Shown: positions 1-62,033 of the stretch, in pieces
Numbering within the stretch: the first letter of the stretch is position 1
Layout: the number at the start of each line of letters is the position of its first letter
NCBI GenBank assembly: GCA_964035545.1
Contig: OZ037765.1
Location: 806,001-870,000, forward strand
Reading direction: 5' to 3'
Length of the DNA: 64,000 bases
DNA from: Bugula neritina
Taxonomy: Eukaryota; Animalia; Bryozoa
The notes under the pieces: model-generated
The model's input: the letters and a program-made list of their open reading frames with translations, nothing else
Database searches by the model: none
Told to the model about the DNA's origin: nothing
Made by a program: the position numbers and the translations under genes

Positions 1-1055
1 ACTGAACCAGAACCTTAGTTGCAGAGTTTTATGCAATTTGAAAGGTAGATGAATTGACATGCTTTCTAGCTTTAAAGTAATAATTACAAATTAGCATCTT
101 TAGATGCAAATCAGCTATATAGGCTCATGTTTTGCTTTGTATTTATTTTAGCAAAATTATGCAGAATAAAAAACAGGTATAGAAAAATTAGAAATCTAAA
201 CCTTATTACAAAATGCCTCAAAATTAAAAAATATTTCTGTGCTATACTTAGTGGACACAATTCTTACTAAACTCTTTGTCATAAAACCTTCATTCACACC
301 AAGCATGGAATAATAATTGAAAAGACATTTTATAAATATTATGATACATATCTATATATCACAAGGTTTGTAATATATATATATATATATATATATATAT
401 ATATATATATATATATATATATATATATATATATATATATATATATATATATATATATATATATATATATATATATATATATATATATATATATATATAT
501 ATATATATATATATATATATATATCACACAAACCTTGAGAGCAGGTAGAGGTTATACAACACATCAGTATACAGATTATGAAGGAGAAATATCTTCTCCT
601 AAAACATATTAATAGTAGGTTTACTATGTCACTTATACACTGTGTCTTGTGTAGATATAGCTGCAGATCAATCTGATATTTATTATATATATTTCACACA
701 GTGGTGGATGTAAGGGAATTATAGGTACATATAAGAGTATATTACCATGCTAAATAAAACTTATAGCAATTATAAATAGCGACTGGTTTAACACAAAGCC
801 TGAAATAAAGCTCTACCAAACATTAAAAACTAAAAAATAGGCATTTATTCTAAGGCTACTCTAGTATAAGAAATTAACTATTGTGGTAAATATCAGAGTT
901 ACCTCCCTTACATATACATGTCACTTCAGGAACATTAACTTATGCCTTAACGATATAGTTAATTATTTATCCAGTGACTAGTATTTTCTCTTTTGTTCTT
1001 AGTATAATACAAAACAAAACAAAACAAATTAATGTATCACCTACCTAACTGCCAT
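1..1055 (-). CDS. Paralogue P9 (5' part only; continues beyond window): signal-peptide exons of the Ig-like/GPI family
   Basis: Exon1 1055-1045 (ATG GCA GTT AG|gt) and exon2 598-534 give [25 protein letters not shown]. Probable start of exon A at 13-1 (GSGSV..). Same leader exons as the other paralogues. Confidence 0.75.
372..524. repeat. (TA)n microsatellite in intron 2 of P9
   Basis: Pure TA run directly after the exon-2 donor; equivalent runs occur in intron 2 of P3, P4, P5, P6 and P8. Confidence 0.97.
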
Positions 1056-1514
1056 TTTCTTGCGCAATGCTCCAGGCATTAACAGCTTTCAAAGTCCTAA
1101 TTATATTACTTTTTTAATGTAATTCATCTTTTGTTTATTGTATGAGCAATTTACAGTATTATTGAAAATGACAATCAAATCTCAATAATTTTAAATATGT
1201 AAAACTTTTGATATTTTAATGCCAATTTTTTTTATATATGATATAATATGATCATAAATTTCTAAAACAGCAACTACTCGTATATAATAATCGATAAAAA
1301 ATTCAGTTTTATAACAATCTAGATTATTATTAACTCAAAGGTTGCCTTTACAATTATTCTATGCATGGCTATAGTTTGTTTCTTGCACATTGTGAATTAG
1401 AAAACAAATGCAGTAATCGATAAATTAATAAAGACCAGTGTTTTAGATCAAAAAGGTATAAAAAACTATGAAGTCCTGTAAAAACCTTAAGCTTTGTGCA
1501 AAAGAAAAATTTAT

Positions 1515-59200: not shown

Positions 59201-62033
59201 TGTTGGACCTGTACAGTAAGAAACAGCAGAATGATGAGATGGGCTATGTATTTACAGAACTTCAGAATCAAGGTGGAGTCAATCAAAGGAAAGGACAATG
59301 TTGGAGCCGATTATCTAAGCCGAATTGACTCAGAATTTTAAGTAGTTAGGAGAAATGATCAAGATAATTTCTCTTAGAATGGGGGGTTGTCACAAATTCT
59401 GAGTGTACATATACCTATAGATAGACTTACCGGGTTTTTCCAAATGATTATACAGGAATGTTCATAAATATTCTAGACTAATCAAAGAGATGGGTCATTG
59501 TTCATTGTTATTTTCATTAGTCATGTTAACTACTGTCCAGCAATGTAAACAAGGTATTGCGCAATAATTGCGAAATAACCATGGAAATTCCAATGTTTTG
59601 TTTTGATTTTCTATAAATAGTATTGGTATGTGGGGAATGTTTTGTACTAGAATCTTCTATACTGGAATGCTTGAGAATGTTCTAGAGTGTTTTGTTTACT
59701 ATAAATACTGAGGCAGTTGTGTTTACGAATCAGTTCCTTTTTATAAGTTCATTCTCGAAGTTCCTTTTTATGAGTTCATTCTCGGAGTTCCTTTTTATAA
59801 GTTCATTCTCGAAGTTCCTTTTTATGAGTTCATTCTCGGAGTTCATTTTTATAAGTTCATCTGCGCATATCTTACTTGAGAAATAAAGTCTACTCATATT
59901 CACAACTCTATTTACTCTTGACTGGATTAGCAAGCTGTATGCTACTTGTCTATACACTTCTGACTACCAGACTTTTCGAACTCGTCACACTGCTACCAAC
60001 AGTTTTGTGACAACATATAACAATTGCTATTGAAACTGTGTTTCCTAACATGAGCAGGTTTATCATTGTACTGTAGTTTGTGGTACACCTGCTTGATATA
60101 CATTGCTCAAATCAACAGGAAGTTATATATCAGATAAGGTCTCTATAAATAGCAACACTGAAGATTACTAATATTAATGACTCATCATCACTCACCAGAA
60201 ATTGACACATGATTCCACGTGACCTTCCAAACAATCGGTGCTGAATTATCTAAATGAAAATTACGGGATCTTCAAATTGTAAGGTTGTGTTATACATGGG
60301 AGACAATTATAAATCTTGAAAACTTAATTTTTATTCTCAAAATATGCATGAACAAGAATGGTCAATTTTAAACTACATAATATTTCATTTCAAGCTATAA
60401 CATGAGTGACTAATTGCTAGTTAGTAATTTTTAATTACTATAATCTCTCCTTGCTAACTAAACTATTATAGCAACTAATTGCTTATAGTTACTAATTGCT
60501 AATTACTAATTACCATAGTCACTAATTGATAATTACTAATTTCTAATTACTAGCTACTAATTGCTAATTACTAATTGCTTGAAGGTAACTATTAAAATTA
60601 CTTACTGAGCCAGTCATATGCTGTGCACTCTACTTCTTCAACATCCGAAGTAACATCTCCAACTGTCAGTAAATATGTGCTCGACCCTTGCATCACCTTT
60701 GTACCTCTTCTCCAAGAGAACCTAGATGGTGGTGGTCTGCTGTCAACATACAGTCCACAATTCAGTTCTCTCTCTTCTGTGCTTCGTAGAGTAATCTGTC
60801 GCACGCCAGATCCGATAGTTTGTATTTCATCTATTGTTTATAGAGTGTACTAGTTAAACTAATTAAGGAGTTTCTTTTAAGAAAAAAGAAAAATAAGCAA
60901 ATAGGTTTCTAGCTTTTTAAGTACGTATAGTTCAACTTTAAAAAAACTAAACTACAATATAAGACTTTATAATGTAAAAGGAGTTGGCAACTTACAGTTG
61001 GGTACAATCTCTACGGCAGCAACCACATCTACCGACTGCAGTCCGTATCTTTTATTGTAGCACCTGAGGATAAACCCATTCTTATCTTCTTGAGCGACTT
61101 GGTAGAATCCAATATTGGATCTACTGTCACCTCTCCCATTAATCTTTCTGGGTGATTCATTTTCTCTAATCACGTCTGAAACATCATGCAGCTCACAAAA
61201 TTATGTTTTCACCAATGCTTCTAGTGAGCTTTAAGCTTTTTACTTGACAATATTTGGTGATTTTTCCCTGAAAACTAACTTAAACCACACAAGGGTCGAA
61301 TTTTGGCTAATTTTAAGATCTGAGATTTTGCTTGTGTTTTAATTAATTACGTCTGGTAATCAAGTAATAAAACAAAATCATGCAATATAGTCAGTTAACT
61401 GAAATAGTTTTCTGCAGCTGGTTATAGTATTTCAAAACAAAATTTGGAACTTGAATTAGCTGTTTTATGGATTATTTATTTTTTAATCAAAATAAACATA
61501 ACAGCTCAAAACTGAAGATGTTATATACTTACCATACTACAACTTACCATACTCTAACTTACCATACTACAACTTACCATACTATAACTTACCATACTCT
61601 AACTTACCATACTATAACTTACCATACTATAACTTACCATACAACTTACCATACTTTAACTTACCATACTCTAACTTACCATACTATAACTCACCATACT
61701 ATAACTTACCATACTATAACTCATCATACTATAACTTACCATACTATAACTTACCATACTATAACTTACCATACTATAACTTACCATACTCTAACTTACC
61801 ATACTATAACTTACCATACTCTAACTTACCATACTATAACTTACCATACTATAACTTACCATACTATAACTTACCATACTACAACTTACCATACTCTAAC
61901 TTACCATACTACAACTTACCATACTACAACTTACCATACTGGTATGAGGCAAAAGGGTCATTACTGGCACACTGCACCTCCATATAATCTCCTAATTTTG
62001 CTGGCGTTGGACGATAATCCATGGACACTGCAG
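53296..62033 (-). CDS. Paralogue P1 (5' exons not identified in window): 4 Ig-like domains, NGRGDS motif, GPI signal
   Basis: Exons A 62033-61935, B 61175-60996, C 60830-60606, C2 60249-60196, D 55360-55193, E 54739-54584, F 54414-54181, G 53432-53296 (..ISNSASVQIISSVMGLIILALLWTIIANQ*). Frame is open. LTR element in the C2-D intron. Confidence 0.78.
53872..54010. repeat. (GA)n microsatellite
   Basis: Pure GA run. Confidence 0.97.
55479..60012 (+). mobile_element. Ty3/Gypsy Gmr1-like LTR retrotransposon, RT-deleted, recent insertion
   Basis: LTRs 55479-56103 and 59388-60012 (625 bp, TG..CA, identical by eye). TSD ACATA. PBS TGGGGGCTGCTCCGGGA (tRNA-Pro-like). PPT AGAATGGGGGG. Confidence 0.93.
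56200..59328 (+). CDS. Gag-protease-integrase polyprotein (1042 aa), lacking reverse transcriptase
   Basis: Two zinc knuckles (CFICKDKSHIARNC, CSHCKMNNHNTSDC), protease MRDTGC, integrase HHCC (AHD..GHLG..CDIC) and D,D,E (DLVG/SDQG/VEKFN) plus WQGPF. RNase H C-terminus (RWAMYLQ..IKGKDNVGADYLSR) survives only out of frame at about 59220-59341. Confidence 0.9.
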   Translation: MALLERVTQMGKDLGLVEDKLVAFVEKNLPIVAAQEEKEKDREEKKKDREERRLEREAEKIRQENEKALMEMKIKADQEAMALKVKADQEAEERRQRHELNMEKLKADTSLEHSRHESTRLEIANKPKPKIPFFDEKVDEMDSYLERFEWVAEGCNWDKGDWPYHLSQYLRGTATEAYIRLSPTDRRDYKKVKEALLERFNLTQEGYRKKLREAEAYEDETPAQLFTRIESYVHKWVELSGGMDIAKLVATEQFISSCPDDLAVHLKQSSYNSSEDMCDAASLFLHARGRKLAKTKKTNTKRMENTPASSMNAEQGSKSDGACFICKDKSHIARNCPWRGKKYCSHCKMNNHNTSDCRKYGGRSVHAAAAIATTQNKTVVIDPGISSKVEEPTEITVNGKKFINAAVCKHGPKFKDGGTAIFDAEVNGQRATAMRDTGCDCIVVNAKYVQPQHLTGESVYLKMADASVREAQWALISVRSPFYNGVVKAAVMDKTICDLLIGNVDGARSADQPLENWKDCAVTTRAQAVKEKSGDKPLKIDSNTNPLSIGKDEIARLQRDDPTLERFFDAKEVKEKKGCTTRFVVRNKILYREYTDSKPVSVKPVKQLMVPSSLRKEVLQKAHDCIMSGHLGVKKTTDRVLSNFFWPGLNGDVVRFCQSCDICQKTVKKGSVMKVPVQETPLIDTPFKRCAIDLVGPINPPSEKGHRYILTLVDYATRYPEATPLKNIDSATVAEALLDIYSRVGIPEEVISDQGTQFISDYMKEFTRLLDMRQLPTSPYHAMANGLVEKFNGTLKSMLKKLCAKEPRQWHRFINAALFAYREVPQESTGFAPFELLYGRTVRGPMYILRQLWTKEDTADEVKTCYQHVFELRERLDDMMEMALASLKDSQKRYKHYFDKKAKQRDFKPGDKVLILLPTDGNKLLMHWQGPFNIEEKVRLNDYIINIRGKRRTYHANMLKKYFERETPTDSMTAGAVRTLDAAGAGIIDHDKEREESQDDLLDLYSKKQQNDEMGYVFTELQNQGGVNQRKGQCWSRLSKPN
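61525..61940 (-). repeat. 15-bp tandem repeat (about 27 copies) of the exon A 3' end and 5' splice site (P1)
   Basis: Minus-strand unit AGTATG|GTAAGTTAT (plus strand ATAACTTACCATACT), starting exactly at the exon A donor. Confidence 0.92.

Follow-up and report, generated by a model that had tools for sequence, protein, structure and literature searches.

A tandem array of putative GPI-anchored immunoglobulin-type genes in the bryozoan Bugula neritina

Which kind of surface protein is encoded by the tandem genes of a 64-kb stretch of Bugula neritina DNA (the window, i.e. the whole stretch that was analysed), and do these genes belong to any recognised family of receptors? A preliminary description of the window had proposed a minus-strand array of at least nine paralogues built from one exon set, and this was borne out: nine minus-strand genes (g1-g9) lie head-to-tail and share recurring exon classes, with tblastn E values down to 1e-49 between copies. 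The end it had placed at 62033 was wrong, as the 65-nt leader of g1, the most diverged leader of the array, lies at 63557-63493, the ATG exon of the same gene (64018-64008) falls immediately beyond the window, and g9 extends left of the window to about -4530 (full model of 538 aa with four Ig domains). One or two further diverged members are located at about +64.8 to +72.8 kb, just past the window end, and the total array size is about eleven duplicated genes including the copies outside. The features of the window are listed below.

53296..63557, minus strand: g1, four Ig domains and GPI-type end, 442 aa; orthologue in L021-L023
55479..60012, plus strand: young Ty3/gypsy-type LTR element in the g1 intron between exons C2 and D
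51312..51448, minus strand: extra intact terminal exon (G strand and GPI signal) without an upstream Ig4 exon
44462..50261, minus strand: g2, four Ig domains and GPI-type end, 433 aa, 10 exons; orthologue L029
36764..43385, minus strand: g3, 419 aa, short D exon after the mariner remnant
39502..40590, minus strand: Tc1/mariner remnant in a g3 intron, flanked by two (TA)n runs
30105..35655, minus strand: g4, four Ig domains, two Thr mini-exons, 478 aa; orthologue L030
22271..28535, minus strand: g5, four Ig domains, five Thr mini-exons, 527 aa; orthologue L020
18146..21649, minus strand: g6, two Ig domains and GPI-type end, 233 aa; orthologue L027
14335..16770, minus strand: g7, two Ig domains and GPI-type end, 231 aa
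2414..13492, minus strand: g8, six Ig domains, 609 aa when a downstream acceptor is taken for exon D, one leader
1..1055, minus strand: g9 5' end (ATG exon, leader, start of exon A); orthologue L031/L032, with the 3' end in L028

The nine models, predicted from genomic DNA, are stop-free, range from 231 to 609 aa and combine a signal peptide and a GPI-type end with two, four or six Ig-type domains and a Thr-rich stalk whose exon number varies. The uniform four-domain organisation described earlier applies to g1-g5 and g9, while g6 and g7 have two domains and g8 has six, its Ig1-2 unit being duplicated within the gene. Core exons placed by homology have AG, phase-1 and GT boundaries in nearly all cases. 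All junctions of the final models are canonical (87/87) and internal stops are absent, a count that is partly by construction because some boundaries (the Thr mini-exons, the D exons of g1, g3 and g8, and exons A and C of g9) were picked to fit the models. The earlier statement that every full-length frame is open stood as to internal stops and needed qualification for two genes. In g8 the homologous acceptor leaves exon D one base short, and the frame is open solely when an acceptor further downstream, at 4348, is used; in g3 the model depends on a weak acceptor where the (TA)n run adjoining the mariner remnant ends. g3 is a recent duplicate of g2 (91-97% nucleotide identity) and carries a partial additional E exon at about 38634-38566. 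The extra terminal exon is either an alternative end of g1 or what is left of a deleted gene. A Dscam-like arrangement, with a single gene using alternative exons, was considered and rejected, since each unit except g8b has its own ATG, leader and terminal exons. No run among the RNA sequencing runs searched contains the 64-kb stretch. As for the mobile elements, the Ty3/gypsy-type element has identical LTRs of about 625 bp, a 5-bp target duplication and a single 1043-aa frame matching SCAN, protease and integrase, with no reverse transcriptase match in that frame; the Tc1/mariner remnant has inverted ends of about 340 bp.

Two domain types alternate in the predicted proteins. In Ig2 and Ig4 the C, W and C residues are invariant across copies, and the canonical I/V-set tyrosine corner (D-x-G-x-Y-x-C) is absent from every copy; these domains had been taken as the regular ones, and the Ig-like part of that view found support, but with C-W-C kept and the tyrosine corner missing they are atypical too. 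In the Pfam, AlphaFold and Foldseek comparisons proposed earlier, the AF2 model (pLDDT 79, G strand missing) had mostly IgSF proteins as top matches in VIA structure comparison (Z 5.0-5.7, middling), including CD22 d7, CEACAM5 B3 (Z 5.3), OPCML and MAG, while the match to Pfam Ig_3 was below cut-off (E 1e-4) and Foldseek against the PDB returned none at E<=0.001. HHalign gave 98.5% against outside Ig domains, and an Ig beta-sandwich with a B-F disulfide and core Trp is supported for Ig2 and Ig4. Ig1 and Ig3 lack Trp; their two invariant Cys are spaced by about 50 residues, and a D-x-x-G-F-x-x-x-C motif is present. Their identity as Ig folds is weakly supported by profile comparison, with HHalign at 93% over 39 columns of the N-terminal half only and exon D matching Pfam Ig_2 at E 0.027. 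A PDB sequence search yielded two weak matches, DIP, OPCML and MDGA1 were among the fold or sequence matches, and an ESM Atlas query with exon B was uninformative. A GPI-type C-terminus was predicted in 9/9 models by a rule-based script: omega sites lie 22-29 residues from the C-terminus with small omega and omega+2 residues and a spacer, and the hydrophobic stretch is followed by only 2-4 residues, leaving no cytoplasmic tail. The products of g1-g9 are therefore predicted to be GPI-anchored.

Exon-wise profile searches of 1.84 billion representatives revealed no spliced full-length protein, no strong single-domain match outside Bugula samples, and no one-to-one orthologue in the nephrin, Kirrel, Dpr/DIP, IgLON or hemicentin families or orthology to any other conserved known family. 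The most distant matches bear CD22-like or hemicentin-like names, and the best outside domain scored 35 bits versus 70-104 bits for Bugula copies. No related loci were confirmed in metagenomes (query A3), and the literature search found no paper on bryozoan recognition receptors and no matching named family, in agreement with the preliminary description. We regard the array family as undescribed and lineage-restricted.

Close relatives came solely from sample assemblies of B. neritina. Seven of the genes have one-to-one orthologues there, next to the same lipoxygenase gene that neighbours the array; the array lies between this gene and an ABCA gene. Over the seven pairs dS is about 0.26, and dN/dS is 0.2-0.5 in six and about 0.8 in g9 (0.81 against L031; L025, with 1.10, was rejected as the g9 orthologue because the tree places it as a paralogue). 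The orthologue dN/dS is 0.37 [0.29-0.46] for Ig1-2, 0.22 for Ig3-4 and 0.09 for the lipoxygenase control. Rapid evolution was confirmed in that protein change outpaces this neighbour (Ig1-2 dN 0.095 vs 0.019, about 5x faster) and turnover of copy number and domain number in the array is supported; the divergence of Ig1-2 between sibling lineages is moderate and uneven, with 74-89% amino acid identity. By these ratios Ig1-2 stays under purifying selection, except in the recently duplicating g8 and g9 clades, where g8/g9-like copies have dN/dS of 0.5-1.3 and the near-1 values (0.77-1.28) have wide intervals. Among paralogues, exons A/B/C share 44-58% amino acid identity versus 79-87% for D/E/F. 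For exon E, the g5 and g9 copies of B. neritina are 0.91 alike, which is as close as either comes to any copy in the window and closer than to their respective orthologues (0.87 and 0.86), as expected from gene conversion, and Ig3-4 is homogenised between copies.

A larger family with about 80 V-like exons, mostly on C9, contains this pair of domains too, with introns at identical positions. The C9 sister genes show the same exon split and encode a V-like, an odd and a canonical domain in that order, then a TM segment and a tail in which two ITIM matches and one YxxL pair occur; the sister V-like exon folds poorly (pLDDT 55, only generic beta-sandwich matches). This larger family, with its tyrosine-motif tails elsewhere in the genome, lay beyond the view of the preliminary description. 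The tailed sisters are located on other chromosomes than the array, no tail exon of the C9 type was found within the window, and g0, adjoining the array, retains a homologous V-like exon. The array is the V-less, tail-less branch of this family, with a predicted GPI anchor.

Among known systems, the vertebrate CEACAM cluster, in which GPI members (CEACAM5/6/8) stand beside ITIM/ITAM members, resembles the Bugula genes in its tandem IgSF organisation, repeated two-domain units, combination of GPI-type and tyrosine-tailed members within one family, and conversion among inner domains. CEACAMs combine A/B C2 pairs with a V-type N domain that stands at the N-terminus and has no disulfide, whereas the nine Bugula genes have no V domain; sequence orthology is absent, and the Bugula genes have each domain split over two exons, include a Thr stalk and are bryozoan only. 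CD22 and the Siglecs share the C-x-x-x-S-x-P-P-x-x-x-x-W motif with Ig2/4 and the domain order with the C9 sisters, but they carry a V-set domain with a sialic-acid-binding Arg, a TM segment and an ITIM tail, which the window genes lack; the CD22 matches rest on a generic Ig motif, and the Bugula odd domain does not match a CD22-d2-like profile (HHalign 1%). Hydractinia Alr proteins have single-pass TM, V, I and Fn3-like parts, single-exon domains and a tail, and their I-set domains keep Trp and lack the B-F disulfide (PMC9546547). Both are clustered atypical IgSF genes of colonial animals, and in both cases some members of the wider family have ITAM/ITIM tails; Bugula Ig1/3, however, keep the Cys pair and lose Trp, and the genes have a GPI-type end, split-exon domains and no V, Fn3 or TM part. 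Dpr/DIP and IgLON proteins are GPI-anchored, as predicted for the Bugula proteins, with two or three Ig domains and a paralogue-specific outer domain. These families are dispersed and conserved, whereas the Bugula array is tandem, fast-turning, without a V-type first domain and without orthology found to them.

Taken together, we favour, with about even confidence, the reading that the genes are functional and encode surface binding proteins that are lipid-anchored and do not themselves signal, as the V-less GPI branch of an IgSF expansion in the Bugula lineage that works in the manner of the CEACAM or Siglec clusters; as part of it, and held no more firmly, diversity would lie mainly between paralogues, not alleles. 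The proteins probably serve binding of other cells or microbes. The outer pair Ig1-2 would carry the binding specificity, differing among paralogues, and the inner pair Ig3-4 would be a spacer or cis-dimer unit held alike by gene conversion, with an O-glycosylated stalk and the 2/4/6-domain variants setting how far the protein extends from the membrane. Since they lack a tail, the proteins would act as adhesion molecules, decoys or co-receptors, perhaps on epithelial or coelomocyte surfaces and towards microbes, symbionts or neighbouring cells; shared ancestry suggests that any signal would run through the ITIM/ITAM-tailed sister receptors. Unequal crossing-over may generate new specificities, which then pass through a period of relaxed or positive selection, as in the g8 and g9 clades.

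A developmental or neural cell-identity code (Dpr/DIP, IgLON or Beat/Side-like), in which every stable paralogue would label one cell type and pair with fixed partners, is possible but doubtful. It would agree with the GPI-type ends, the 2-6 Ig domains, the dN/dS of most of the seven orthologue pairs and the presence of DIP, OPCML and MDGA1 among the matches; families used in neural wiring, however, tend to be conserved between phyla or classes, and no orthologue was found outside Bugula, protein change is fivefold that of the control, copy number is still changing and the sisters bear ITIM/ITAM-like tails.

Quite unlikely, in our judgement, are allorecognition or kin-recognition determinants like Hydractinia Alr1/Alr2, in which allele-specific homophilic binding marks self. 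The animal is colonial and sessile, its atypical Ig domains are clustered, dN/dS approaches 1 in g8/g9-like copies, and extra g8-like and g9-like contigs (among the former L024, with one Ig1-2 unit ahead of the D exon, and the partial L033) could be alleles or paralogues. Kin-biased larval settlement has been reported for one B. neritina population (Keough 1984, as cited in PMC10078279), but the citing study itself found none. Allelic variation in the very few individuals sampled is so far low, unlike the extreme polymorphism of Alr1/2: g1 differs at 8/1095 bases (0.7%) among three B. neritina runs, with one residue in exon B, and g4 exon B differs by one residue between two assemblies. Variants of run X1 over g2 were rejected as alleles, because 31/31 tested differences match paralogue letters. 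With these data, the one-to-one orthologues and the un-Alr-like exon and membrane organisation, the allorecognition reading offered earlier is not supported so far. We give an equally small chance to the array and its tailed sisters forming a system of self/non-self recognition that evolved in bryozoans independently of Alr, fuhc and MHC, in which the tailed receptors would read the GPI members, especially those of the fast g8 and g9 clades, as polymorphic markers of self; if true, it would be the first molecular handle on lophotrochozoan allorecognition or kin recognition.

Slightly less probable again are gamete, embryo-brooding or larval-settlement recognition proteins diverging between sibling species, a reading that suits GPI-type surface proteins with the Ig1-2 divergence given above but conflicts with purifying selection at most loci. 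That the repeats are decaying pseudogenes, or an artefact of the assembler placing haplotypes one after another, is very improbable despite the g2/g3 likeness, the alternative acceptors of g3 and g8 and the lack of an RNA match, given dN/dS well below 1, orthologues with synteny in an independent lineage, and a run X1 depth of 142-172 over g2/g3-shared parts, which carry g3 letters, versus 53-69 over unique flank, which makes a false g2/g3 tandem unlikely.

Returning to the favoured reading of lipid-anchored binding proteins, surprise is limited because many animals have tandem IgSF expansions of broadly this type. The array also suggests that a CEACAM-style split between tailed and lipid-anchored members originated independently in a lophotrochozoan. 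Reports of larval kin recognition in Bugula neritina are disputed, and the species harbours a specific symbiont that makes bryostatin; this delimited cluster of varied surface Ig proteins, which has orthologues in a sibling lineage, therefore offers direct candidates for the recognition of symbionts, microbes or colonies.

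When the window was compared with itself and scanned for motifs in six frames, repeated coding blocks emerged along the minus strand. One paralogue, g2, was assembled by hand into a stop-free protein of 433 aa from ten exons, and when these exons were used as queries, every exon class was recovered in order nine times (g1, rightmost, to g9, which runs past the left edge), bearing out the tandem array of the preliminary description. With few exceptions, homologous exon boundaries were AG / phase 1 / GT, and the predicted models were completed by ATG exons of 11 or 14 nt, leader exons of 65 nt and Thr mini-exons. 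Junctions were canonical (87 of 87) and stops absent in all nine models, in line with the open frames claimed previously, with a few boundaries picked to fit and with g3 and g8 kept open only by alternative exon D acceptors. None of the RNA runs searched contained the sequence. The extent first assigned to g1 proved too short, its leader (63557) and ATG exon (64018) lying further out. A common plan of four Ig domains held for g1-g5 and g9 and had to be given up for g6 and g7 (two each) and g8 (six). One exon was spare:

51448-51312, minus strand, spare terminal exon

The array proteins belong to the immunoglobulin superfamily (IgSF). In the canonical domains (Ig2, exons C and C2; Ig4, exons F and G) Cys, Trp and Cys were all invariant, and the Ig assignment proposed earlier was upheld by Pfam Ig matches, though weak, by a profile match of 98.5% to outside Ig domains and by an AF2 model (pLDDT 79) whose top structural neighbours were mostly IgSF domains (Z 5.0-5.7); the tyrosine corner was absent from these domains. 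The odd domains (Ig1, exons A and B; Ig3, exons D and E), candidate Ig domains, have two Cys separated by about 50 residues and lack Trp; their N-terminal half aligned to outside Ig domains (93% profile match), and no match to a CD22-d2-like profile was obtained. Each of the nine models carries at its N-terminus a hydrophobic segment that no internal one equals in strength, and near its C-terminal end a last hydrophobic stretch after which just 2-4 residues remain; omega candidates with small residues lie 22-29 residues before that end. By rule only, this fits the predicted GPI signal suggested at the outset.

The window is C1:806001-870000 (C1, a chromosome) of a 216-Mb genome. The array spans about -4.5 kb to +73 kb (window coordinates) and is flanked on one side by a lipoxygenase gene, beyond an intervening Gypsy element, and on the other by an ABCA transporter. 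This Gypsy element, which separates g9 from lipoxygenase, is full-size (L001-L002 in the left flank; window coordinates about -14.2 to -6.3 kb); the B. neritina contig L028 lacks it. The outermost right-hand member lies in the right flank:

L005 795-8820 (window +64.8 to +72.8 kb), minus strand, g0, start not located

This gene is far more diverged than the rest of the array, ends in a GPI-type tail, and has a long Thr stalk and a V-like exon retained ahead of its odd/canonical pairs; upstream of it is an additional partial unit with an odd/canonical pair.

Among the records searched, close homologues were found only in the JGI assemblies 3300002729 and 3300003318 and in runs SRR4020080-83. 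Contig names in both assemblies carry the tag AY690838, which we take to be the accession of the B. neritina mitogenome. Bugula neritina and AY690838 appear together in a mitogenome paper (PMC2678162), and the draft genome of B. neritina is 214-221 Mb (PMC7576161). Identity of the homologous B. neritina contigs to the window, introns included, is only 76-85%, and the animal of the window therefore most probably represents a sibling species within the B. neritina complex. Lipoxygenase also follows the last array gene in the B. neritina lineage, and in the Ig1-2 tree g1, g2/3, g4, g5, g6, g8 and g9 each have a B. neritina partner; extra g8-like and g9-like sequences are present in the B. neritina sample.

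Mean amino-acid identity among paralogues was 58%, 57% and 44% for exons A, B and C, and 87%, 85% and 79% for exons D, E and F. Copies of exon E group neither per gene nor per position, which points to gene conversion. The rapid evolution previously proposed was borne out by orthologue dN/dS, which was 0.37 (0.29-0.46; dN 0.095, dS 0.26) for Ig1-2 and 0.22 (0.14-0.34) for Ig3-4, against 0.09 (0.04-0.16; dN 0.019, dS 0.21) for nine lipoxygenase control exons, a value that leans low because these exons were selected for high conservation. The ratio was 0.81 for g9 and 0.77-1.28, with wide intervals, for young copies of the g8 and g9 clades. Recent structural turnover comprised a duplication inside g8 and the g2/g3 duplication. 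In DNA run X1, depth was 142-172 over sequence shared by g2 and g3 versus 53-69 over unique flank (two to three times), and the 31 listed differences tested over g2 were all paralogue letters and were rejected as allelic variants; the duplication is therefore probably real. Both ends of its unit (window 34957-42573 versus 42686-48997) fall at the leader-exon A (AT)n run, which suggests unequal crossing-over at this microsatellite; owing to these boundaries, the g3 5' end resembles that of g4.

Mobile elements and repeats were also recorded. A young LTR element (window 55479-60012, plus strand), whose LTRs are identical and whose target duplication measures 5 bp, has a single 1043-aa frame in which matches to SCAN, protease and integrase follow a Gmr1-like order; this frame gave no reverse transcriptase match, and the element is therefore apparently non-autonomous. 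A mariner remnant (39502-40590; inverted ends of ~340 bp) is flanked by two (TA)n runs, and beside it g3 exon D lacks its 5' part. Within a g2 intron, a short repeat of very high copy number (~47250-47350; depth ~50,000 in X1) is tRNA-like by eye and probably a SINE, and introns or spacers contain short open frames (~29121-29420, plus strand, and 26.4-27.5 kb) that look like LINE reverse-transcriptase fragments, also by eye. Tandem repeats whose unit includes the 5' splice site of the preceding exon, giving many serial donor copies, have units of 15 bp after g1 exon A and 31 bp after exon D, with a comparable run in g0:

61522-61940, tandem repeat
46570-46769, tandem repeat
31709-32025, tandem repeat
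23375-23499, tandem repeat
4114-4268, tandem repeat
L005 ~3200-3620, tandem repeat

Elsewhere in the genome, a profile search detected about 30 weaker matches to array domains, mostly in clusters on chromosome C9. These relatives have the odd-plus-canonical pair of the array with identical intron split positions, and one sister gene was fully read:

L012 6772-9577 (G000:C9, ~3.19-3.20 Mb), minus strand, V-like exon, odd/canonical pair, TM exon and tail

The V-like exon of this gene has 85 matches genome-wide, and its alignment to the corresponding g0 exon, at 27%, shows Cys in common. The 95-aa tail contains two ITIM matches, one YxxL-x9-YxxL pair and repeated S-P/L-Y-T/I-E-L/M motifs; no such tyrosine-motif tail was found within the window.

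We give roughly even chances to the array being a repertoire of lipid-anchored, non-signalling binding proteins. The outer pair of Ig domains would carry specificity particular to each paralogue, the homogenised inner pair and Thr stalk may fix height, and signalling, if any, would pass via the tailed sisters in the fashion of the CEACAM cluster; microbes, symbionts or neighbouring cells would be likely targets. The sequence data show the architecture, the selection and the common ancestry; location at the cell surface, ligand and any partnership with the sisters are inferred. A developmental or neural adhesion code is a good deal less probable. Outside matches carried the names CD22-like, hemicentin-like, CEACAM5-like or neurotrimin-like; the array proteins are not members of the CEACAMs, the Siglecs or any of the conserved adhesion families tested. 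A marker for allorecognition is doubtful. The array is not a member of the Alr family, whose TM proteins combine V, I and Fn3-like parts and have each domain in a single exon (PMC9546547); within-species variation, which had been proposed for measurement, looks ordinary, with 8 differences in 1095 bases of g1 between runs and one differing residue in g4 exon B, an estimate from a handful of runs that possibly share samples. Recognition of gametes or larvae appears slightly less probable again, and decay or artefact is very improbable.

The best outside score per domain was at most 35 bits, versus 70-104 for most Bugula copies, and a literature search of limited reach found no published description, in agreement with the initial view that this is not a named family. 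The array is real, undescribed in the literature found and lineage-restricted among the records searched; clusters of this kind are already known, and the array is a fresh variant of them.
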